The notes: generated by a model not told the origin, from the sequence alone. A stretch of 63,912 bases of DNA, filler included, from Hyphochytrium catenoides (GCA_900088475.1; 10 parts of 10 records of this genome joined end to end with filler, not necessarily neighbours in it), one strand, 5' to 3'. Shown: positions 7,426 through 21,849, numbered from the whole stretch's first letter. A program made the numbers and translations.

Positions 7426-7526
7426 NNNNNNNNNNNNNNNNNNNNNNNNNNNNNNNNNNNNNNNNNNNNTTAATTAATTAANNNNNNNNNNNNNNNNNNN
7501 NNNNNNNNNNNNNNNNNNNNNNNNNG
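7426..7526. other. Artificial contig spacer N-TTAATTAATTAA-N (first of nine)
   Basis: The identical all-frame-stop 12-mer flanked by N runs recurs at about 7470, 21894, 27719, 47237, 49497, 51087, 52832, 55367 and 59855. Confidence 0.97.
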
Positions 7527-7820
7527 AGAGAGAACAGAGGGGAAAAGAGAGTCGGAGAAAGAAGAAGAGAGAGCATCCAGAGACAAGAGAAGGACTTGAG
7601 AAAGAGAGGCGGTTGAGCGAGAGAGAGAATTGAGAAAGAGGTAAAATGAGAGGCATGGAACAATTCTGACGCGGAGTATGAAAGAAGAAAAGAGGAGCCA
7701 AAATGATGCAAAAAACGAGAGAGAGAGAGAGAGAGTTTTAAGATTCAGAGAGCATAGAGTACGGATGAAGATGAGGGGAAAGAGAAAGAGCTCGAGAAGT
7801 AGTGAAGAGGAGAAAAAACA

Positions 7821-7863
<43 letters not shown>

Positions 7864-7905
7864 CAGAGAGAGAGAGAAAGGGAGAGAGAGAGAGATGTAG
7901 CACAC

Positions 7906-8015
7906 CTGTGCACCAATTGGGATGGCACTGGTAAGTGTGGCGGCTGACGAGGTCTTCGTAGTATGACTGCAAGACAGAGAACTGAAGGAGAGAGAGAAAG
8001 GAATAGATAGGGAAA

Positions 8016-8047
<32 letters not shown>

Positions 8048-9737
8048 GTAACGAGAAAAGGAACCAGAGAGGGAACGACAGAGAGAGAAAGAAGCGAGGT
8101 CAGAGAGAGAGAAAGGGAGAAAGAGAGAACGAAAGAGCGAACGAGATGGGGAGAGAGAGAACAAAAGAGCGAGAGAGAGGAGGACGGAGGGAGGTCCGCC
8201 AGGAAAGAGAAAGAGAGACAAGAAAAAAGAGGGAGAGAGAAAGAGAAAGAAAGTGGAGAACAGTTGTAGAAAGAAGAGGGAGAGGAAGAAGAGAAGCGGA
8301 GAGAAATACTAATAATACCAGGGCAAAAGGAGACAAGACTGTGAAGAGAGAGAAAGCCAGACTGAGGAGACGGAGCCAGAGTCAGAACAGGGAAGGACAA
8401 GACAGAGGCGAAATCAAGAAGTGAGCGAAAGGTTGGAGGAGAGAAGAGAGACAATGAGAGAGAGTGAGAGAGAGAGAGAGAGAGAAAAATGCAAAGCACC
8501 AAGAGAGGGAGACACGAGAATAGAAGAGAGGACATATAAGGTCTAAGGGAGAGAGAATGGACAGAGAAAGAGAAAGAGAGAGAGAATTGTGGTCTACATT
8601 GTTCGCTTTGATCCACTTCGGTGCCTGTTCCTTCGAGATTTCTTCTTCCATTCCCTGGCGATCCAGCCAGAAATCTACGGCCGGCAGCACCACATCGGAG
8701 CCCATACATTGGACCTGGGCAAGAGAGAGAAAAGAGAGAAAGAGAGAGAGAGAGGAGAGATAAAAGAGAGGAAATCTCAGGAAGATGGGGACTATTACGG
8801 TAGGTCATCGTAGAAGGAAAGGATATACGGAGAGGAAAGCAAGTAGCTAAAAGGGAAGAGAGAGAGAGAGAGAGAGAACAAAGATCTATGGAAAAAATAA
8901 GAGAAGAGAACGACAGAGGAGACAAAGAGGAATCAGAGGGGGAAAAGAGAGAGAGGCGACAATGGTGGCATGAGAGAGAAGGGAGAGAAGTCGCTGACCG
9001 CACCTTCTTTGAAAGCAGGTTATCGACGCACACAATGCAGTAACGCCCGTCCACGCCAAAAGTGTCTGCAAAAAGAGACGCATTCAGACGCGGAAAGTAC
9101 TAGAAAGCCTAACAGACGCAAGATGATGGATTTCTGAAGGTTTTCGTAGCAGAAGAATACTGCGGTTCTTTAATGTTGCTTGAAAGATCAAGGAACCCGA
9201 CAACGGCAGGCAGGGAGAGTGGAAGAGAGAGAAAGCAAAGAAGAGAGAGAACGGGGACAGGACGAAAGACGAGAGAGACAGAGAAGGTGGACAGGGTGAT
9301 CGCAAAAGTAAAAGCTAAAATCACACTTTGTATAGCCAGGGCACTGTTGTCTCCCATTTTCGCTATTCTCTCTCTCTCTCTTCTCTTCTTATTCTTTGAA
9401 TCTCTGCACTCACATTTGGGACACGGCTCGCAGGAGGACTCTCCCCCTTCCTCGTCTCTATTTTTGGGCCTCTCTCCTCTCTTGCATTCCGGTCTAAACC
9501 GGGAAGCAGATCGATTAGCGTCCAGGTGATCCAAGAACAGAAAGAGAGATGCAGTCATTACGGGAGAAAGAGAGGAACAGGACAGAGAGAGAGAGAGAGA
9601 GAGGAGGAGAGAGGAGGAAACGGACTCATACTACAGAAAGCGTGCGTAAAAGACGAAAGTCGGAAGTACATGAGGAGCCACATAGCACCTAGAGAAAAAG
9701 AGAGAGTACAGAGAGCGAAAGACACACAAGCAGAAAC

Positions 9738-9780
<43 letters not shown>

Positions 9781-11943
9781 AAGCGGGAGAAAGGGACTCA
9801 AACCTCTTGCACTGAAACTCGTTGTATCCGGTGCTATAATAGTCCTGACCACAGGTAAACGTAGAAGACTTGCAGCTGTAACTGCAACAGTCACCACCAT
9901 CCCACTTCCAGAAAGAGAGAGGGAGGAGAGGGGAAAAGACAGAAGGGAGAGAGAGAGAGAGAGTGAAAGTGAGGGCGAGGCCGAGAGTGAGACAGATGAA
10001 AGCGAGAGCGAACGATAGACAGGGAAAGAGTTAAAAAAAGATACAGAAATACACAGAGAGATATGCATATAAGTAGAAGCGGGGCGCATGAGAGAAAGAG
10101 AGAGACAGCCCCAGAGAGAGAGAAAGAGAGAAAGTCTCCAAGTTCGCTCTCCATGACGACAGGTAATCTTCTCATCATACCTCTAGGCTCCAGCACTTTT
10201 ACAATCTCACCCCTTCTTCGCTTACTCTCTATTTTTCTCTCTCTTCTTCACCTTCTGTTTTTTTCTTTCTCTCTCTCTCTCTCTCTCTCTCCCCATATTC
10301 ATGTCCCTTCCTCACGTTGTGCTAGCTCACCTGACACTCCTGCCTGTTGTTCTCTTCGTCACACCAGCCGTCTCCTTTCCAGTCCTCACGACAGGGAAGA
10401 GAAGAGAGAGAGAGAGAAACAGACGAAAATGTGGAAGAGGTAGAGAGCGACGAAGAAGAGGGTGCAAGAGATATGTTTGAGGACGTGGAGCACGTTCTTT
10501 CATACTGGCAACTCAGTTCTTCCAACGAGTCAGAGGGATACATAAAGGCGGGACCGGTGAAGATCGCGTCGTCTAAGAGTCTCTCTCCCGTCATTGTGTA
10601 CAAGTGAGCCAAGATGACGGCGCCATAAGCCTTCAATAGAAGACAGACAGAGAGAGAGAGAGCTTATGTGAGAGAGGCGAGAGAAAGGAGAGAGAGAAAT
10701 AGACAGACATAGAGAGGAGAAGAGAAAGAGGAGAGCAAGAAACAATGAAGAGAAAGAGAGAAAAAAAGAGAGAGCGAAAAAGAGAGAGAGCGAGAGAAGA
10801 AGGAGAGAGAAAGAAGAAAGAGAGAGAAAGAGTGAGAAGGAGAAAGAAGAGAGAGTGAGATGGAAAAGGCAGAGCAAGAGAGAGAGAAGAGAAGAGGAGA
10901 TAAAAAAGAGATAGCGGGCATAGAGACAAGTTTAATCAAGGAGAGAGAGAGGGAGAGAGGGAGAGAGAGAGAAAGGACCGAAAGGAAGGACACAAGGGAG
11001 AGCTAACACCGAGAGAGGTGCAGAAAGAACACGAGACAAAACAGGGCGCAATAGAAAGAGAGTGAGGAGGAGAGGGAGAAGAGAAAGTAAAAACGAGGGA
11101 AGCGAGAAAGGGAGGGAGGGAGCAGAAGAAAGGAAAGAGAGAGAGAGAGAAAGAAAGAAAGCGAGAGAAACAGGGAGAGAAATACAGAGAGAGAGAAAGA
11201 AGAAAGGCACCTGCAGTCCTTGTTGTTGGTCCAGAGAGAAAGCCAGCTGGNNNNNNNNNNNNNNNNNNNNNNNNNNNNNNNNNNNNNNNNNNNNNNNNNN
11301 NNNNNNNNNNNNNNNNNNNNNNNNNNNNNNNNNNNNNNNNNNNNNNNNNNNNNNNNNNNNNNNNNNNNNNNNNNNNNNNGAGAGAGAGAGAGGGGGAGAG
11401 GTGATGAGGGCGACATGCGACAACAAAAAAAGAGGAAGCAGGAAGAAGAAAAGGACAAATAAGAGGTGATCACAATAAGAGAGACAGAGTGGTACGAAGT
11501 CATTATCATAAGAGAGAGAGAGAGATGTTGGATAGGGAAGGAGAGACAACCAGAAGAGAAAGGAGAGAGAGAAAGAAAGATAGGAGAGAAGGGAGATACA
11601 CGCAACACATAGATGATCTGGAGAGTAAAATGTAGGGACTCACGAGGAAAAGAAATGCACAAACAAGAAAATAGAAAAGGAAAAGAAGGAGACCAACAAG
11701 AGAGGAAGAGAGAGTATGTAGACAAAGGAGATAGAGAAGAAGCGCTGACAGGATTATATATGAACGAGAGAAAAGAAGGAGAGAGACAAAGAAAAGAATT
11801 AAAAAAAAAAGCACTGGGAGTTACCCATGGAGAGAGAGAGGAGAGAGCGAGAAAAGTAGAAAGGGAGGCGCTGAGAGATCTTCCATGGAGAGAGAGGCAG
11901 GAGAACGAGAGAGTGAAGAGAGCGAGAGAGAAAAAGAGAGAGG

Positions 11944-11979
<36 letters not shown>

Positions 11980-14784
11980 AAAACAGAGAGGGAGAGAGAG
12001 AGAGAGAGAGAGAAAAACAGAGAGAGAAAAACAGAGAGGGAGAGAGAAAGAGTGAGAAACAGAGAGAGAAAGGGAGAGAAAGAGCAAGAAAAAGAGAGAG
12101 AAACGAAGCTCATCATCGTTTCTCTTTCCTTACTTTGGCAGCAGTCTATTCTCGGAGAGATAATGCAGAACCTGAAGATAGATCGTCCCGCAACAGACGA
12201 GAATAGAGCGGATGGACGGCGTGGCCTGAAGATATTCTGCCAGGTTCTTCTCCACAATCATCCCGTCATAACTTGCACTCATGCGAAAAGCCGTTCTCTC
12301 TCTCTCTCCCAGTGTGTCTTCTCTTTCTTCAAAGCCTTGTTCAAAGCCATCACAGCGATCTTTCAGGTTATCTTGGTCAGGATAGAGGAGACAGAGGCCG
12401 TCCTTTCTCTCCCAGACGCCTAACTTTGTCTCTTCTTCATTTCTTCTCTTCTTCATCTCTCTCCCAGCTTGGAGGCCGGCGAAGGTCTCCACTTGCCCTA
12501 CATAATGTATTGGCTTGACACCAAGAATGCGATCTGCTTTATCTCCGGCATTGACGGTGAAGAACGGGATGGAAGAGAGAGAGAGAGAGAGAAGAGACGC
12601 GTTCAAGGCTTTGTACGAAGGAACTGCAAGAATGACGGCCGAGGCATTTTCTTCGATGAATCTCTCGATGTACGTCCCCATTCTCTCCATCTCTGCATTG
12701 TTCCCAACGCCATAGATATACTGAAAGGCATCGTCGGACGGCCCTGAGCAGGAAGAGAGAGAAGAAGAAGAAGAAGATGTAGGAGAGAGAGAGAGAGACG
12801 AAGAAGAAGAAGAAGGAGAAGAGAGAGAAGAAGAAGAAGAAGATGTCGTGCAGTCCGTGAAGGGCAGGCCGATATCCTCCAGAGCCGTTAACGTCGCATT
12901 TTTGTAGGACATCCAGAAGGATTCTTGGGCATTTCCATGGGTTAAAAACCGGTAACGGACATTCTTCCTCGTCCATTTTTTCTTTGGTTCTCTCTCTTCT
13001 TTTCTTTCTTCTCCTCCTCCTTCGTTTCCTTCCTCGGTGGACGAGGAAGAGGAAGAAGGAGAGAAGAAGGCTCTTGGCCCGGCCTGTAGGACGTTGTTAA
13101 TGTTCTTGGCCTTCATCCCGGTCGTATGATAGTAGACTATAAAGGTGAGGCTTAGATAGCCCTGAAGATACGGCTGATCCGAGAGAAAGACATCCAAAAA
13201 TCCGTCCTGGAGAAGCGTCTCTCCGTGCTTTGTATGGCCAATACTGCCCACGCAGAGAGAAGAAGAGAGAGAAGAAGAAGAAGAAGAAGAGAGATGCTCG
13301 CCCTTGCGAAAGCTTCCAATTATTTCTTTCCATGTGGGCAGGTTGAGATTCTGAAGGCCCTGGACAAAGATGGCCGTTGAGTTTCTCATCCCAGAGTTTA
13401 ACGTTCTTTTCATCTCATCCACCGAGAAGCCGTCCAGGATCAGGGTCCGAGGTGGAGAGAGAGAAGAAGAAGAAGAGGAGAGAACGTCAACGAAGCCTTG
13501 ACAGCGTTGTTTGGAGGCTTCATGATTTGAATCTATGGGGCAAAAGAAGGGAGAGAAGAGAGACAGAAAGAGAAGAGAGAGAAAGGAGAGAGACATGAGA
13601 TAGGATCCCAACATAGAAGATGAAGGGAGATATATATATAGGAAAAAAAGAAGCAGAAGAGTGAAAAAAAGAAATAGCGCAGAATGGAGAAAAGAGGGAA
13701 ACCAGAGAGAGAACGAGAAAACAGAGAAAGGAGAGGGACGGTGTAAGGTAGCAAAAGAGTCAAGATGATGAAGAAATGGAGAGAAGGAACGCCGTGCGTG
13801 GGGACAAAACCCAGAGATGGAGAGAGAGAGAGAAAAAGAAAAGAGCATTCAAGTAGACGCAGAAGACAAGATAATGTCTATGTCCGATGATAAGTAGAGA
13901 AGAGATCGAGGGACAAGAACTGCGGTAGAGAGAGAAACGAGGAAGAGGCGAGCTAGCAAAGAAAGAGGCGCAAAGATGAACAAGGTAGGAGAGATAAGAC
14001 AAAGCAAAACAGAGAGAGAGAGAGAGAGAGATGTACCTTGGAAGCAGACTGTCTCTCTCGAACAATTCCTCGTTATAAACTCTCGGGCCAGGGCGGCGCC
14101 CGCCTCATAGTTGTCCATCCCAATGTGAAGCGCCTTTGGATGGGAATTATCCGCAGGCTGCGCGCCGATGGTAAATACTCTAAATCCACTGTCTCTGAGT
14201 GCCTTTATCGCGGTATCTACCGCCTTTCCAGGGACATAATAGACCACCACCGAGCTCTTTCTCCCACCGGCAGCATCGCTTCCTCCTCCTTCCTCTAGGC
14301 CAGCGCCTCTGTCTTTCTCTTCTTCTTCGTCTTTCAACTGCGTCAGCATCGCTGCTAGAGCCTTAGCCCTGTCATTATAATAGACATCCACAAAGTCATT
14401 GTACGTTGGAAAGTGCAGCCGTGTACGTACTCTCATTCGCTTTGAGGCCTCTAAAAACCCGGTCCGGACGGTAAAAAACACGTCCTGACTAGCCGCTAAC
14501 GGGTCTAATGGCAGGACGAGATGGACGGTAACGGCCGTCCGGTTCTTGCAGGGGCAGGAGAGAGAGGAAGAGAGAGAAGAAGAGAGAGACAAGAGAGGAG
14601 CATTGAAGAGAAGCAGGAGAGAGAAGAGAAGAGAGAGGAAAGAGGAGGGATGGAGAGAAGAAAAGAAGAAGAAGTTGTTGTGAGGAGAGAGAAAAGAAGA
14701 GGAGGAGGAAAAGAAGAAGAGGGAAGGCGACCTTCTCCTCTTTGATGAGAGGGAGAGTGGTGAGATCTTCTCGCCTCTCTTCAT
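7906..14784 (-). CDS. Receptor-like protein: hydrophobic N-terminal leader + two type I (sugar) periplasmic-binding domains + LNR repeat + GCC2/GCC3-like Cys-rich region; 3' truncated by contig end
   Basis: Exons 14784-14037, 13532-12134, (N gap)-11211, 10630-10331, 9904-9804, 9493-9414, 9065-9004, 8714-8598, 7966-7906. Splice phases are consistent at every junction that can be checked. PBP motifs: HIGMDNYEAGAALARE, QRCQGF, DQPYLQGY; LTHG...SFW, HYVGQVETFAGLQAG, NLKDRCDGF, FSLDQQQGLQAY. LNR: CREDWKGDGWCDEENNRQECQWDGGDCC. Cys-rich region: SCEPCPKYTFGVDGRYCIVC...VQCMGSDVVLPAVDFW...YQCHPNWCT. The start codon is less certain. Confidence 0.85.
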
Positions 14785-15501
14785 CGTTTTCCCGCAAAGA
14801 AGAGAGCCTATCTAGAAGAAGAGGGACAAAGAAGGGCCTCACTTTCCCGGCTGGGGAAGAGAGAGAGAAAGAGAGAAAGAAGAGAGACAGCCGTTTATGG
14901 GTTGATGGAGCTAAGAGGAGGAAAGAAGCGCGGGAGAGAAAGACAGAAAAGAAGAGGAACAAGAAGAGAGAGCAAAGGTTCTCTCTCAAGCGAGAAAGAA
15001 ACTAATCACTTCTAAGCTGGCCCGCCGCCCCATTGTCCCGTCTCTCCTCTGCATCCTTCCCTCGTTTTTCTCTCCCTCTTCTGTCTCTCTCTGCAGAAGA
15101 CAGATGAGCCCTCAAATATTCTCTCTCCCAAACCTGTGTAACCTCTCTCCTTCCTAGGAAACTCAGAGGACGACAAAGGATGTCAAAACAAAGAGGAGAC
15201 AGGATCATTGTCTTCCTCTCGCCGCATCCTCCTCCTATCCTACTTCCTCTACAAGGACTCTCCCGCTTTCTCTCTCTCTTTCTCTCTCTCTGTCTTTCTC
15301 TTCTTCTCTCTTTTGAATCCCTGGTACCGTGCTCTTCTTTCTCGCTGCTGAGATCAATGAATGAGTTGCTCTCTCTCTCTCTTGGTCTCTCCTAGCGCCA
15401 GATAATTGCGTCTTCTATCTCTCTTCTTGCTGTTGCAAGTCTCTCTTCCTCTTGGGGAGGCGCAGAAAGAGCTCAATCAGCTTTCCTTCCTGTTGGGGCT
15501 A

Positions 15502-15533
<32 letters not shown>

Positions 15534-15683
15534 CCACCGCGAATCCTGATGGGAGCAGACGGCGCAAATGACTTCCTAGGGCACATCTCTCTCCCACACC
15601 CTTCTACGCCTGGGTGACTCATTTTTCTTCTCTTTTCTTTCCTTTCTCTCTCTCTCTCTCTCTTTCTCTCCTCTCTCTCTCCC

Positions 15684-15734
<51 letters not shown>

Positions 15735-16160
15735 AACCCCCTGCTGGGTGACTCGGTTTCCTCTTACATCACGGTGCCCAACCGTGCCAAGCGCTGCCTC
15801 CAGAGAGAAAGAACAGCACTATGAGGAGGAACTATCGAACGGAGACTGTAAGAAAGAGACGAAAAAATGAAAGAAGAGAGGTGCACACCTCCAGGAAGAG
15901 ACACTAGCTAGAAACAAAGAGAGAGAGAGAGAAAGAGAAAGAGAAAAGAGAGGCAGTGGCTGCTGGACAGACAGAGAGAGAAACGGGAGGCAACCAGCCA
16001 AGGGAAGTTCGGGAGAGGCATGAGCCGCCAAGGCAAGGGAGAGCAAAGAACGAAGAGAAGCGAAAGAGAGAAGAAAGGACGGTGCTCCAGAGAGAGAGAG
16101 AGAGAGAGAGAGAGACATGAGTTGTCGGAATAGAGAGAGAAGAGAGAGGGGAGAAAGAAA

Positions 16161-16261
<101 letters not shown>

Positions 16262-16764
16262 GCTCTTCAAGGTGCATCAAGCCCCTCAATGTGACCGTTT
16301 CACATGAAACCTAACAAATTCTTTGAGCTCGAGTGCGTGTATAGACCCGGGTTAATGACCCAATATTCTAAAGGTTAAGCTTTATATATGTGGACCTTAT
16401 CCGGGCCTGACTCGGGTTAATTGTTCCACTGAATGCACTGTATGCGCTATGACGCAATCTTGAATGTTTGGGTAGGGGATTTGGGATAAATGTAGGATTT
16501 AACCCTGCTATCGCTGATCTGGATAGATAGGGGATGAAAGGCGTTACGTTCCTTGGAAGGGACGATCATGCCCATCCCAAGTCCCGTTTATTGTTGCAAG
16601 ACAAGAAGGAAAGAGGAGAGAGAGAGAGAGAGAAAAAAGAGAGCAATTGGGTTAGCCGAAAGAGGGAAGATAGAAGACAGAGTGGGAGAGAGAGAAGAGA
16701 TGCTTCAGCCTTTTTCATTTGCTTTGTGCTCCCATTGGCTTCTTTTCTCTCTGATCTCTCTTCT

Positions 16765-16860
16765 CTCTCTCCCGGATTCTCTCTCCTCTCTCTCTCCCGG
16801 ATTCTCTCTCTCTCTGTCTCGGATTCTCTCTCTCTCTCTCACTCTCCCGGATTCTCTCCC
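16765..16860. repeat. Minisatellite, four units of (CT)n-CGGATT
   Basis: Core ctcccggattctctc (one variant ctcggattctctc) recurs four times within CT microsatellite. Confidence 0.6.
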
Positions 16861-16977
16861 ACTATCTCTCTCTCTCTCTCTGTCCACTTTTTTAACGATC
16901 AACTTTGTGCTCTGCATTTGGCTTTCATCATCACCTTTGTGTTCTGCATTGTTTTTTTTTCTCTCTGATATCTTCTC

Positions 16978-17015
<38 letters not shown>

Positions 17016-18351
17016 CAGTGCTTCTCTCTCTTTCTCTCTCTCCCCGTGCTTTCTCTCTTTCTTTCTCTCTCTCTCTTTCTTCTTCCTCAAACTACTACGT
17101 AATGAAGAGAGATGAAGAGTAGCGGAAAATGAAACTATTTAGAGGAACGAAGACAAGAAGAGAGGATAACGAGAGAAAATAAAAAGGAACGAGAGCGGCA
17201 CAACAATTACAAAAGGAAAAAAGGAGATAAAGACAAAGAGGAAGAAGTGGATGAGCCTGGTGATCTCTCTCTTTTCTCTCCGACCCTTGTGACTACTTAC
17301 TTCTTCTTCAACATCTATTCTTTGCCTCCTCAATAAAGAAGAGAACGACCGAAGAAAAATGCGAAGAGAAAGGAAGAAGAAGAGAAAGAGAGAGACAGCG
17401 AAAAAGAAGAGGGACTGAGAGAGAGAAGGAGAGAGAGACGGGAGGAGAGAGAGAGGAAAGACAAGAAAAGAGGAGAGAGGACTTCTTTAAGTAGCAGACG
17501 GAGTACAGTGTAGAATGAGGGACACTGAGGAGTCGACCCACGCACCACAGAGAGAGAAAGAGGGAGAGAGAGAAGAGAAGACGGAGGAGAAAGAGAGGAG
17601 GAGAGAGAAGAGAGAAGAAAGACACACCACAGAGACACAGAGAGACCAAGAGAGAGNNNNNNNNNNNNNNNNNNNNNNNNNNNNNNNNNNNNNNNNNNNN
17701 NNNNNNNNNNNNNNNNNNNNNNNNNNNNNNNNNNNNNNNNNNNNNNNNNNNNNNNNNNNNNNNNNNNNNNNNNNNNNNNNNGGAGAGAGAGAGATACAGA
17801 AAGAGGGGACGACCAGAGAAACAGAGAGGAGACAAGAAAGAAGAGGAAGAGAGGGAGACAGCAGAAAGGACGAGAGAGGAGGTTAGTGGTAAACCCTAAC
17901 TTTAGGCATGGGAGAGAGAGAAGAAGAGAGAGGCAGGGAACTCGTCTTCCTCCCCAATAATCCGAGAGAGAAAATAGTGTAGATCCTCCTGAGCTGGAGC
18001 AGGAGCTAGCTCAGCGGCAGGAGGAAGAGAAGCAGCAGAAATTAAAAAGAGAGGAGGAGAAGAGAAGAAGAGAACAGGGGAGAGAGAGAGGAGAGAGAGA
18101 GTTGAAAGGCGGCAAGGAAGGCGCTGAAGGCGGTAAAACTGGAAACTATCATGCGGACAGTTTCCTCATGCAATGCCAAAGACACCTGCTGTCTGTCTGA
18201 TGAAGCGATGACGAAAGAAAGAAGTGTTCATCGCGTTCCAGCAGAGCCACGGCCCGGCGGTCTTACCTTTTCTATAAATAGGAGTATAAGAGAGGAAAGC
18301 AAAGGCGGCTTTCTGCTTTTGGTTACACTGGTGGTTTCCCTTCCGTCCCTT

Positions 18352-18394
<43 letters not shown>

Positions 18395-18505
18395 TTCTTT
18401 GTCTCTCTCTCTCTCTCTGTCCCCCTGTCTCTTTCTCTCTCTCCCTGTCTCTTTCTCTCTCTCTTTGTCTCTTTCTTTCTCCCTGTCTCTTTCTGCCTCC
18501 CTCTT

Positions 18506-18554
<49 letters not shown>

Positions 18555-20216
18555 GCTCTCTCGCTCTCTCGCTCTCTCTCTCTCTGCTTTCTCTCTCTTT
18601 GTTTTGTTTATACTATTATCGCGTACGAAGAAGCGGGGAAGAGCAGAGGAAGACGAAGACCATATTATATAAAGAGAAAAGAAAGTGAGAGAGAGCACAC
18701 ACAATAAAGAGAGAAATAAGGTGGTGAAGAAAAAGAAGAATGGATGAGCCTGCTGATCTCTTCTCTCTCTCTCGTTTTGGTCGTCGGTCCATCTCTTTGT
18801 GGCGTCTCTTCTGCTCAGTATCTAAGCTTTACCTTCTAAAGAAGAGAAACAGACAACCGGCAAAGCAGACTAGGCCGCCAGACACAGAAGAGGAAGAGAA
18901 AGGAAGGGAGAGAAAGAGAGAGAGGAGAGAGCGAGGGAAAGAAGATGAAAGAGAAGAGAGAGAAGAAGGAAAGAGAGAGATCGAGAGAGAGAGAGAGAGA
19001 AAGAAAAAAAGGAGAGGGAAAGAGAGGGGAGAAAAAGAAACGACGACGCATCTTCAAATAAGAGTAAGCCACCGAGGAGAGAAGGAAGAACACAAGGAGA
19101 AAGAACGTCGCGAGAAAGAGAGAAAGCAGCGTCGTCCTTCCTCTGAATTGACAGACAGGTACAGCATAGAGAGAGACAACGAGGAGTCGGCATGCACAGA
19201 GGGTCACAGAGAGAGAGAGCGAGAGAGAGCGAGCGAGAGAGAGAGAGAGAGACAGAGAGACAGAGAGAGAGACAGAGAGAGAGACAGAGAGANNNNNNNN
19301 NNNNNNNNNNNNNNNNNNNNNNNNNNNNNNNNNNNNNNNNNNNNNNNNNNNNNNNNNNNNNNNNNNAGAGAGAAGAGAGAGGAGATAGAGGAGACGGCGG
19401 GTAGAGAAAGAGACAGCAAGAGGGAGACAGCAGATAGGGAGAGAGGGCGAGTGGGAGCAGGAGAGAGGGAGAAGAAAAAGGTGTAGTTTGGCAGGCAGAA
19501 GATTGCGAGAGAGAGAGAGGACAGTAAGAGAGACAGAAAACAAAGGGAGATAATAGATGGATAGATAGATAAATAGTTCTGGTAGAAGGGGAAAGAGAAA
19601 CAAAGACAAAGAAAAGTAGAAAAGTGAAAACGGAAAGGAGCGGTTGAAGTGTCCCTTGATACGCCAGAGAAGAAAGAGAGAGAGAAGAAGAGAGAGAGAG
19701 AGAAGAAGAGAGAGAGAAAGGTTGCATCGTTATGTGGTAGCAAACCGATACTAAGATAACAGCTGGCAAAAGGAGCTTCAAGGCAAGATCTAATGTCTTT
19801 CCGAAAGGGCACTTGCTTTCCTGACAAACGTGGAAGAGGACAGTGAGAGAGAGAGAGGCAGCCTTTTTGCTCTAGAGAAGAGGAAGAAAGAGTCTTTCCT
19901 CACTTTCTTATTGCCTCTCTCCCTAGTAGGTCTTTTAATAACTGACAGGACAGGAGACACGAGTGGATGATCCAGTTTGAAGAAGTTCCAGCGTGGTAAC
20001 ATCTCTACCAGGGAGAGAGAGACACTTCATGGCCTTTCTTTCTTCTCTTCCTCATCGCTGTCTGTCCTCATCAGGATTGTTCCCTGAAGGTGATCCTTCC
20101 TCTCAAGATTTTAAGGGAGAGGCACCGGATGGAAGAAGAGTCTTCAGGAAACTCATAGGTAGATCACTTCGTGAAGAAAACAGTCCTGCCAAATGAGGAC
20201 AGCAATGAAAGAGAAT

Positions 20217-20268
<52 letters not shown>

Positions 20269-20385
20269 AAGAAGAAGGTTGTTATATGTATATCCGGTGC
20301 ATGGGAGGATGTGACGTTTTGTCTCTCTTTCTCTTTGCATGTTATTAGAATAAACTGTTGACACTACTTCTCTTGCATGTTACTC

Positions 20386-20507
20386 TATTAACTGAGATAT
20401 AGAGGGTAAGGAGAGAGTCTCTCCCTTTTATTTTTGCATTTCTCTAGGTAGACTGACTCCCTCCCAAGGGAGAGACTCTCTCCTTTCCCTCTATATCTCA
20501 GTTAATA
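20386..20507. repeat. 42-bp near-perfect inverted repeat (hairpin; MITE-like or pre-sRNA)
   Basis: Arms 20386-20427 (TATTAACTGAGATATAGAGGGTAAGGAGAGAGTCTCTCCCTT) and 20466-20507 are reverse complements with one mismatch; 38-nt spacer. Confidence 0.9.
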
Positions 20508-20629
20508 AACTTCTTTCTGAAGTAGAAGATCCTTTGCTGCTTGACTTGCGTATGTTCCCGCAAAAGTCTTTCTCTGCGTGGTGCTTGTCTGAACTAAGGC
20601 CTGGCCAGCCAAGGTACAGAGAGAGCACC

Positions 20630-20662
<33 letters not shown>

Positions 20663-21211
20663 GACCTGCCACAGTCTCACATATGCCAGAAGGTTATGAA
20701 TGAGGTGTTCTCTCCTAATAATACCTTGGGATGTTACCATCGTGGACCACTGACCTCAGACGATCTGCATTCATTCACTGTTGCAACATTCGTGGTGATA
20801 GAGATGTTAAGCTTGTCGTTCTTATAAACTTCTTTCTGAAGTAGAAGAAGATCCTTTGCTGCTTGACTTGCGTGTGTTCCCGCAAAAGTCTTCCTCTGCG
20901 TGGTGCTTTTCTAAAACTGAGGCCTGGCCAGCCAAGGTACAGACAGACAGAGCACCTTCTCTTTCTTTCTCTCTATCGTGGAACACTGACCTTAGACTAC
21001 GATCTGCATTCACGGCAACATTCGTGGTGATGGAGACGTTAAGCGTGTGATTTTAAGTGAAGTGATTGTACTGGTGAAGAAAGTGTTCCACGATGGTAAT
21101 GTTTCCTGTTAGGACAAGCACAATCACCCTAAAAACGACAAGGTTAACGTTCTCCATCACCACGAATGTTGCAGCAATGAATGCAGATCGTCGTAGCCGT
21201 CTAAGGGGTCA
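20505..21211. repeat. Diverged tandem duplication (20505-~20815 and 20824-~21044) plus an inverted partial third copy (~21134-21211)
   Basis: Both copies begin ATAAACTTCTTTCTGAAGTAGAAG...GATCCTTTGCTGCTTGACTTGCGT and end ...CGATCTGCATTCA...GCAACATTCGTGGTGAT...GTTAAGC. The reverse complement of this tail (CCATCACCACGAATGTTGCAGCAATGAATGCAGATCG) is at ~21154-21190. Confidence 0.85.
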
Positions 21212-21679
21212 AAAAAAGAAGGATGGATGGATGCGGAGACCGACCGACAGCAGGAGAAGAGAGAAGACAGAGCATCGAAGATGGTGACAGAAGAGATGAT
21301 GAAATTGTCAAACCAGCAGCAGCAGAGGAGATAGAGACAGAAGAAGAAGAAGAAGAAGAAGAAGTGAGAAAGAGCGGGAGCCGAGGGGACAAAAGGGAAG
21401 GACAAACAACCCACTTCCTCCTCGCTCTTCTGCCGCTGGAGAGTGCATGAGGAGGAGACAGCACAGCGAGCTGCGCGAAGAAGCGAGGAATAGCTACTGA
21501 GCGACGGAGAAGAAGAACTTTGATTGAGGAATGGATGATGTTGAGCGAGCGATGAATCAAAAATCTGCGGCGGGCAGAGAAGAAGAAGAAGAAGAGGAGA
21601 TTGCCGAGAAGAAGCAGCACAACCCTAACAAACGCGAAGTGACCCTGCTAAGCTTGAGCAGTAATGTACGCAGATATTT

Positions 21680-21849
21680 TTAGGGCCGTTCCCATCGAGA
21701 CTTTTTTTTTGGTAGTCGTAGCACGAGGTAGCATGCTACCAGATCGAGTCGGTAACGTCATTAATGTAGCATGCTACTACTGCTTGCATGCTACCGTGCT
21801 ACAAAAAAAAATGTATCATGGTATCATGCTACCGGCGGTATCATGCTAC
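21680..21849. mobile_element. Putative PIF/Harbinger (Tourist-like) element end with palindromic GTAGCATGCTAC subterminal repeats; cut by contig end
   Basis: TTA followed by GGGCCGTTCCC, about five copies of (G)GTA[GT]CATGCTAC, and an internal T9...A9 inverted repeat. The second end is not visible. Confidence 0.45.

Follow-up and report, generated by a model that had tools for sequence, protein, structure and literature searches.

Tandem sugar-binding-type flytraps and an LNR-containing linker in a spliced gene of Hyphochytrium catenoides: a putative protist receptor ectodomain

The DNA analysed here, referred to as the window, is a stretch of 63,912 nucleotides from Hyphochytrium catenoides (GCA_900088475.1), made of ten parts joined end to end with filler. 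On the minus strand of one of its pieces (7526-21849) lies a gene, read from 14784 down to 7906, that encodes two tandem type I (CUT2, Peripla_BP_4) Venus flytrap domains of the periplasmic binding protein (PBP) kind, followed by a LIN-12/Notch repeat (LNR) and a cysteine-containing tail. What the piece contains is at least the 5' two thirds of an intron-rich nuclear gene from a microbial eukaryote. Judged from its sequence, the gene is a divergent member of an existing protist receptor family, uncharacterised and already catalogued, and no wholly new system. We put at roughly 55% the probability that it codes for the ectodomain of a membrane receptor belonging to this protist 'tandem sugar-binding-protein' family.

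Two tandem flytrap domains in a spliced gene

Both flytraps are recognized by sequence profiles. The Pfam family Peripla_BP_4 matches the part of domain 2 encoded in exon E2 with E = 7.2e-12 (45.8 bits, against a gathering cut-off of 35.1), and the E1 fragment alone with E = 6e-4 (19.9 bits). A bacterial profile was also built from 28 single-domain relatives of about 300-365 residues, every one sampled being a bacterial sugar-binding protein. Against the spliced model it finds domain 1 at 8.9e-15 (47.4 bits) and domain 2 at 1.2e-30 (99.5 bits), with a second segment of domain 2 at 2e-5. The alignment to this profile crosses the E1/E2 junction (..VCFQ/DSNHEASKQRCQGF against ..alCvnhevgnvaleeRcaGf, the slash marking the exon boundary) and the E3b/E4 junction (DQQQGLQ/AYGAV against DqQpYLQGYLpv). 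Exon E3b matches the profile motif iefaiDqQpYLQGY, and there are weak tblastn matches from several homologues at 11249-11175.

All the motifs named in an initial annotation of this DNA, which had proposed two tandem bacterial-type sugar-binding domains, are found in the spliced exons, and both domains are significant by profile as Peripla_BP_4. Domain 1 contains GMDNYEAG, RCQGF and DQPYLQGY, and domain 2 contains THGNAQESFW, YVGQVETFAG and RCDGF. The residues that are near-invariant in the bacterial subfamily (THG..FW, GQ.E..AG, RC.GF, DQQ..LQ.Y) are retained in domain 2; domain 1 is more diverged.

Structure prediction, which had been suggested as a check on the fold, confirms a type I two-lobe fold for domain 2. 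The AlphaFold2 model, which covers the portion of domain 2 encoded in E2 (residues 1-277, from an alignment of 57 rows), has a mean predicted local distance difference test (pLDDT) score of 78.4 and a predicted template modelling (pTM) score of 0.75, the sole disordered stretch being a poly-Ser insert (residues 45-66, pLDDT < 50). With this model Foldseek returns 234 matches in the PDB at E <= 1e-3, with TM scores of 0.55-0.64 among the top matches, as computed for a truncated domain. The best is 4RU1 (2.7e-9), followed by 5DTE, XylFII, GanP, RbsB, the allose-binding protein and LuxP, all of them sugar-binding proteins or their relatives. A direct sequence search of the PDB agrees in finding sugar-binding proteins, and the neighbours in the ESM Atlas are all bacterial CUT2 clusters.

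The poly-Ser inserts in E2 are encoded by in-frame (TCT)n at 12751-12840, 13262-13284 and 13451-13478, and place 6 to about 35 residues inside otherwise conserved flytraps. They were considered as hidden introns and rejected as such, since they are in frame and have no GT..AG borders.

The gene model has nine firm exons and one tentative micro-exon, all with GT-AG borders, open and in phase (Table 1). An alignment-free check of composition gives a pyrimidine share on the sense strand of 52% in the exons and 78% in the introns. Islands of at least 45 nt that are not CT-rich were located from 14867 down to 7887, and each overlaps a model exon except those at 13901-13855 and 9690-9617. The piece has about 46% G+C and is packed with (GA)n/(CT)n arrays, and its long S/L/F-rich open reading frames (ORFs) are read-through of pyrimidine-rich (CT)n simple sequence in the introns. 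The model exons are thus islands of normal composition, and the initial annotation was correct in describing a spliced eukaryotic gene of at least nine exons hidden among microsatellite pseudo-ORFs. There are no in-frame stops in about 2.9 kb of model exon sequence. Pyrimidine-rich introns several hundred bases long, blocks of nearly pure purine or pyrimidine, and scaffold gaps that hide small exons are also published features of Physarum polycephalum, in which introns are about 1 kb long and 92-94% CT or AG; its genome is reported to contain 38 family-3 G-protein-coupled receptors (GPCRs) (PMC2258281, PMC4758236).

Table 1. Exons and related features of the tandem flytrap gene. Positions are those of the window; a slash marks an exon boundary.
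Feature	Position	Strand	Description
Alternative first exon	15208-15143	minus	22 codons, MILSPLCF...; donor GAG/GTTACA, phase 0; hypothesis from sequence reading
E1	14784-14037	minus	ATG at 14784; CT-rich 'leader' 14711-14564; domain 1 N-lobe from ~14556; donor CAAG/GTACAT, phase 1
E2	13532-12134	minus	Domain 1 C-terminal part (RCQGF, DQPYLQGY), acidic/Ser linker, first three quarters of domain 2 (THG..FW, YVGQVETFAG, RCDGF); donor CCAAA/GTAAGG, phase 2
E3a, tentative 16-nt micro-exon	11617-11602	minus	..KSSMCC; acceptor ctccag/, donor /GTGTAT
Assembly gap (N)	11251-11379		Inside domain 2
E3b, 5' end cut by gap	11250-11211	minus	QLAFSLDQQQGLQ; donor CAG/GTGCCT, phase 0
E4	10630-10331	minus	Domain 2 end (AYGAVILAHLY..FTGPAF), Ser-rich linker, LNR first half (C..GDGWCDEENN..EC); donor CAG/GTGAGC, phase 0
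E5	9904-9804	minus	LNR second half (WDGGDC) and 'CC' cysteine module (CC..C...F.C...G.N.F.C); phase 2 out
E6	9493-9414	minus	Charged linker ending ..SSCEPCPK; donor T/GTGAGT, phase 1; in composition island
E7	9065-9004	minus	(Y)TFGVDGRYCIVCVDNLLSKK; single frame compatible with E6 phase
E8	8714-8598	minus	VQCMGSDVVLPAVDFW...; second frame also open; alternative donor possible at 8617
E9	7966-7906	minus	..YQCHPNWCT in the frame of the initial annotation; T/S/A-rich alternative frame also in phase; donor CAG/GTGTGC

Not all parts of the model are equally firm. The micro-exon E3a continues the phase of E2 and matches the profile at positions ~240-246; it lies outside the composition islands, so its support is weak. 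The frames of E8 and E9 are not unique, in that a chain of E8 ending at the donor at 8617 and E9 read in another frame is also in phase. At the 5' end, the leader that follows the ATG at 14784 (codons ~25-80) is CT-rich like the introns, and the alternative first exon would join an acceptor tgcaag/AAC at 14544, in phase 0 on both sides. If this alternative exon is used, the hydrophobic leader described in the initial annotation is intron read-through. As it was made, the claim of such a leader is unsupported. At the other end, the 380 nt from 7905 to the edge of the piece at 7526 are CT-rich intron, and E9 ends at a donor with no stop codon. The protein therefore continues beyond the piece, and its C-terminus is cut off.

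Four runs of N lie inside the piece or at its edges, and one of these falls within domain 2. The alignment to the bacterial profile extends to position ~246 upstream of this gap and resumes at ~268-310 downstream, in the correct order and on the correct strand. The gap hides about 20 residues (profile positions ~247-267, of the form G.D....L..G) together with the acceptor of the next exon. The last residues before it, ..LLPKSSMCC, rest on the weak exon E3a, and the frame that begins directly next to the Ns on the downstream side gives QLAFSLDQQQGLQ, which corresponds to profile position ~268 onward. The parts of the domain found on the two flanks are consecutive, do not overlap and have the same orientation, which at the sequence level is good evidence that both fit one gene, though it proves neither the frame nor the continuity across the Ns.

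Close to the gap, on the minus strand in frame 1 at about 11516-11490, there is a stretch reading ..SYDNDFVPL.. that resembles the profile segment tfDlsadvl, which domain 2 misses. It was rejected as the missing part of domain 2, since the sequence from 11617 to the gap has no AG acceptor. It may be due to chance, to non-canonical splicing, or to an assembly error of the homopolymer or indel kind.

The LNR linker and the cysteine-containing tail

In E4, a single uninterrupted exon, the last ~45 residues of domain 2 are followed by a Ser-rich linker and then by the LNR's first half. Because E4 carries both, the PBP and the LNR belong to one gene, and the placing of an LNR after the flytraps in the initial annotation is borne out. 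An intron splits the LNR after ...ECQ and before WDGGDCC, and the LNR is continuous in two homologues. These are P0073, a metagenomic protein of 1015 residues with the order Peripla_BP_4 - LNR-CC - 7tm_3, and P0045, a transcript of the labyrinthulomycete Mucochytrium quahogii encoding 1550 residues with the order 2xPeripla_BP_4 - LNR-CC - ANF_receptor - 7tm_3, where CC is the cysteine module that follows the LNR in E5.

Searches with tblastn match E4 to P0009 (6e-4), P0003 (1e-3) and also P0045, and E5 to P0073 (4e-8) and P0045 (9e-7). When the LNR-CC tail is spliced across the E4/E5 junction, phmmer finds P0073 at 4e-14 and P0045 at 3e-13. The Pfam Notch family (PF00066) gives 13.2 bits and E = 0.12 on the half-domain in E4; the LNR of P0073, placed between Peripla_BP_4 and 7tm_3, passes the Pfam cut-off (22.8 against 21.2 bits). 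The sequences GDGWCD and DGGDC, the latter being the calcium-site motif of LNRs, are present, and only four cysteines are in LNR positions, likewise in P0073 and P0045. What we take to be the fourth canonical LNR cysteine position is Asn in all three proteins.

The size of the LNR-CC family was addressed by a region search with P0073, which returned P0073 alone. Marine metagenomes are rich in the pattern [WY]DGGDCC, with 382 confirmed stretches, most of which lie in genes that have many tandem LNR-like repeats and lack a flytrap. Eighty of these 382 loci were fetched (L001-L080), and 79 are generic multi-LNR genes with no flytrap; only L055 has a Peripla_BP_4 domain upstream. In the literature we found no paper describing an LNR between a flytrap and a seven-transmembrane (7TM) domain. 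The LNR-CC module occupies the position of NCD3G, the nine-cysteine domain that links flytrap and 7TM. On our boldest reading, which is a prediction and an improbable one, LNR-CC would be a new Ca2+-dependent coupling element replacing the NCD3G of class C GPCRs.

Beyond this module, E6-E9 encode about 105 residues with ten cysteines, in a chain of frames that is in phase, and the family of this tail is unassigned. Homology support for E6 is limited to its first 2-3 residues, and E7 has no family match by Pfam, by local alignment or by a home-made profile of the repeats of P0009, P0057 and P0097, three relatives with cysteine-rich stalks or repeats. Pfam run on the unspliced ORFs of the tail gives no match at E <= 10, including to NCD3G and Ephrin_rec_like. 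The same repeat profile gives 1.1 bits against the tail, and Smith-Waterman scores of the tail against the stalks of P0009 and P0057 lie inside the range of shuffled sequences. The description of the tail as GCC2/GCC3-like is thus negative by Pfam, by the home-made profile and by shuffled Smith-Waterman; what the tail has is a loose C..CP..[ST][FY]......C..C pattern and an equally loose P...FW / Y.C....C.

A membrane anchor cannot be seen anywhere in the piece. Two candidates for a membrane helix were rejected as CT-rich, intron-like sequence: the hydrophobic read-through that follows E5, and ..SVILAFTFAITLSTFSVSLVF.., which follows E6.

Relatives, proposed function and alternatives

HMMER was run exhaustively against 1.84 billion representative proteins and gave 88 matches at E <= 1e-3, the best at 1e-13. 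Each of the top nine matches has a pair of Peripla_BP_4-type domains, the second one being truncated in P0004. The named species among the top relatives are diatoms (Seminavis, a Bacillariaceae metagenome-assembled genome (MAG), and Pseudo-nitzschia), the green alga Ostreobium, and Picozoa, the others being from environmental assemblies. Among the relatives scanned with Pfam, seven combine tandem Peripla_BP_4 with 7tm_3. P0057 and P0097 (from Pycnococcus and Pseudoscourfieldia) have 2xPeripla_BP_4, three to four copies of Ephrin_rec_like, DUF7630, a TRP-like channel and EF-hands, and P0009, from Picozoa, has tandem Peripla_BP_4 with PA and Ephrin_rec_like. The initial annotation had not recognised the combination as a described family. 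It can now be said that tandem Peripla_BP_4 ectodomains are catalogued in diatoms, a labyrinthulomycete, green algae and Picozoa, and that two relatives share the LNR-CC module.

Related proteins have been reported before. Port et al. (2013; PMC3727952) described three class C GPCR-like proteins of P. tricornutum with N-termini resembling the binding proteins of ATP-binding cassette (ABC) sugar transporters, and anaerobic fungi have other non-canonical fusions of binding proteins to GPCRs (PMC5168858).

A tree of 85 domains was made in order to distinguish an ancient from a private duplication, and to look for a bacterial origin. First and second domains form separate D1 and D2 clades in the main stramenopile-type family, which points to an old duplication there. 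The window's domain 2 falls at the base of the D1 clade (SH-aLRT, the approximate likelihood ratio support, of 84), and its domain 1 is unplaced. The phylogeny proposed as a check thus recovered the old duplication of the family, and gave neither a placement of the window domains nor a private transfer, so that a lineage-specific horizontal acquisition followed by duplication, as put forward in the initial annotation, is not shown.

In the same tree, P0012 (from a MAG of the bacterium Tetrasphaera sp., 635 residues) and P0014 have tandem Peripla_BP_4 domains in which the two domains are each other's closest relatives. The tandem duplication therefore also arose independently of the eukaryotic family.

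On the basis of these observations, we propose that one or both flytraps would close on a small solute, for which a monosaccharide or polyol is the likeliest candidate, and that the movement would be relayed through a rigid stalk, stabilised by the disulfides and Ca2+ of LNR-CC, to a membrane transducer coded beyond the end of the contig. The transducer would most likely be a class C 7TM domain, as in P0073 and P0045, the two relatives that share LNR-CC.

Several points weigh against this proposal. A profile made from seven homologous 7tm_3 domains, run against all the minus-strand ORFs in 7526-9830, reaches 1.0 bit at best. In P0073 the 7TM domain starts about 15 residues past the CC module, where the window protein has at least 105 more residues. 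Identity to the relatives is 27-34%, meaning that the 1.84 billion proteins include neither the window protein nor any close orthologue of it, and the branches leading to the window domains in the tree are both very long, with end lengths of 3.5 and 2.7 changes per site, and unplaced. The nearest solved folds make a sugar or polyol, as suggested in the initial annotation, a reasonable guess for the ligand, one drawn from fold neighbours only. It is uncertain whether the true 5' exon starts at 14784 or at 15208; both candidate leaders are ambiguous on sequence grounds, and the presence of a signal peptide is uncertain.

The flytraps and the cysteine-containing tail might instead be the whole functional protein, either secreted, anchored by glycosylphosphatidylinositol (GPI) or held by a single membrane pass, and binding solutes or glycans for nutrient capture or adhesion with no signalling module. 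About half of the tandem relatives (P0001-P0008) are 600-780 residues long and have two Peripla_BP_4 domains and nothing else, and this explanation would also suit the lack of a 7TM signal downstream of the flytraps and the long tail past the LNR, unlike that of P0073. Against it, the only relatives that share LNR-CC both end in 7tm_3, longer relatives with cysteine-rich stalks (P0057/P0097) end in multi-pass membrane domains, and the last exon has a donor and no stop, so that the protein continues; a protein of this kind is therefore unlikely. It is quite improbable that the flytraps gate or regulate a TRP-like ion channel with EF-hands, as in the Pycnococcus and Pseudoscourfieldia relatives. 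P0057 and P0097 do fuse 2xPeripla_BP_4 to a TRP-like domain, and the window protein also has a cysteine-containing stalk with its loose C..CP and P...FW / Y.C....C patterns, but there is no significant similarity between this tail and the stalks of P0057 or P0009, and those proteins have no LNR.

The locus itself could be decaying or mis-assembled: it might be a pseudogene, or the scaffold might have brought together parts of different paralogues on either side of the gap. The gap in domain 2, the weak exon E3a, the YDNDFVPL stretch with no usable acceptor, the long poly-Ser inserts and the very long tree branches would all be explained in this way. We nevertheless hold it to be very improbable: some 2.9 kb of exon sequence is free of stops, the flanks of the gap are consecutive and in the right order and strand, the near-invariant residues of domain 2 are kept, and gaps that hide small exons are typical of such assemblies (PMC4758236). 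Bacterial contamination, by which the gene would encode an ordinary ABC-transporter sugar-binding protein, can be dismissed. The best profiles, folds and Atlas clusters are indeed those of bacterial CUT2 binding proteins, but both domains are interrupted by GT-AG introns that are 290-630 nt long and contain microsatellites of eukaryotic type, and are fused in one exon to an LNR. In addition, no transporter ORF (ABC permease or ATPase) is found in 7526-21849, and the gene does not have the setting of a free-standing ABC binding protein. The exon-intron structure rules contamination out, and a receptor ectodomain is the reading we prefer.

To our knowledge, no member of the protist tandem flytrap family has been studied at the bench. 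The window contributes a member that is very divergent and has a rare LNR-CC linker. Sugar chemotaxis is a classical observation in Physarum. Should the ligand be a sugar and the membrane part 7TM, the gene would be a testable candidate for protist sugar chemoreception; until its 3' end and expression are known, it is of limited practical value.

The region upstream of the gene (14800-21849) contains no tRNA and no convincing second gene. It consists of alternating purine and pyrimidine blocks of several hundred bases (15600-15700 is 92% pyrimidine, 16100-16200 is 7%, and 18400-18600 is 93-96%), with further assembly gaps at 17657-17781 and 19293-19366. A direct repeat of 73 nt occurs at 20521-20593 and 20843-20915, the copies being 93% identical, 322 nt apart, and each within a short ORF beginning MLLDLR.FPQKS...; the repeat may be an element of the dispersed or tandem kind. 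Just upstream of it is an inverted repeat of 42 nt (20386-20427 / 20466-20507), 98% complementary with a 38-nt spacer.

Comparison with known systems

The window protein shares with the bacterial CUT2 binding proteins (4RU1 ACEI_1806, 3ROT, RbsB 2IOY, ALBP 1RPJ) the type I two-lobed fold and the motifs THG..FW, GQ.E..AG, RC.GF and DQQPYLQGY. The bacterial proteins are single-domain, about 300-340 residues long and periplasmic, and work with an ABC permease, whereas the window gene has tandem domains, spliceosomal introns, poly-Ser inserts, an LNR and a cysteine-containing tail.

Among the protist proteins, the two-domain ectodomain is common to the window and to the tandem Peripla_BP_4 proteins with 7tm_3 (Seminavis robusta CAB9525747.1, which is P0027, and the metagenomic P0024, P0025, P0031 and P0055), which are among the best matches in the database although only 27-34% identical, and to the P. 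tricornutum proteins of Port et al. (2013). In those the 7TM domain comes directly after the second flytrap, whereas in the window this place is taken by LNR-CC and at least 105 residues, with no 7TM in the piece. In P0073 and P0045, too, the last flytrap is followed directly by this four-cysteine LNR (C..GDGWCD..N...C.[WY]DGGDCC) with its CC..C...F.C...G.N.F.C module; both proteins run on into 7tm_3, or ANF_receptor and 7tm_3, where the window runs into an unassigned cysteine-containing tail, and the flytraps of the window are very divergent. Pycnococcus provasolii XRB08851.1 / P0057 and the Picozoa protein P0009 resemble the window in having tandem flytraps followed by a cysteine-rich stalk. 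They differ in lacking an LNR and in their Ephrin_rec_like or DUF7630 stalks, to which the window tail is not significantly similar.

The LNR of the window has the DG.CD...N...C..DGGDC core of Notch/LIN-12 repeats (PF00066), with its acidic and Asn positions. It has four cysteines instead of six, and is present as a single copy outside any Notch negative regulatory region.

The metazoan class C GPCRs (mGluR, CaSR, T1R) consist of an ANF_receptor flytrap, NCD3G and 7tm_3. The scheme in which a type I periplasmic-binding-protein sensor acts on a membrane transducer through a rigid link rich in disulfides would be common to them and to the proposed receptor. In the window, the flytrap is Peripla_BP_4 and not ANF/LIVBP, and is duplicated in one chain, the link is LNR-CC and not NCD3G, and 7TM is not observed. 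In more general terms, metazoan class C GPCRs use an amino-acid-type flytrap, whereas this scattered protist family uses a duplicated flytrap of the bacterial sugar-transporter type, with a 7TM domain or a TRP-like channel as output. The protist family illustrates the repeated recruitment of periplasmic binding proteins as eukaryotic sensors.

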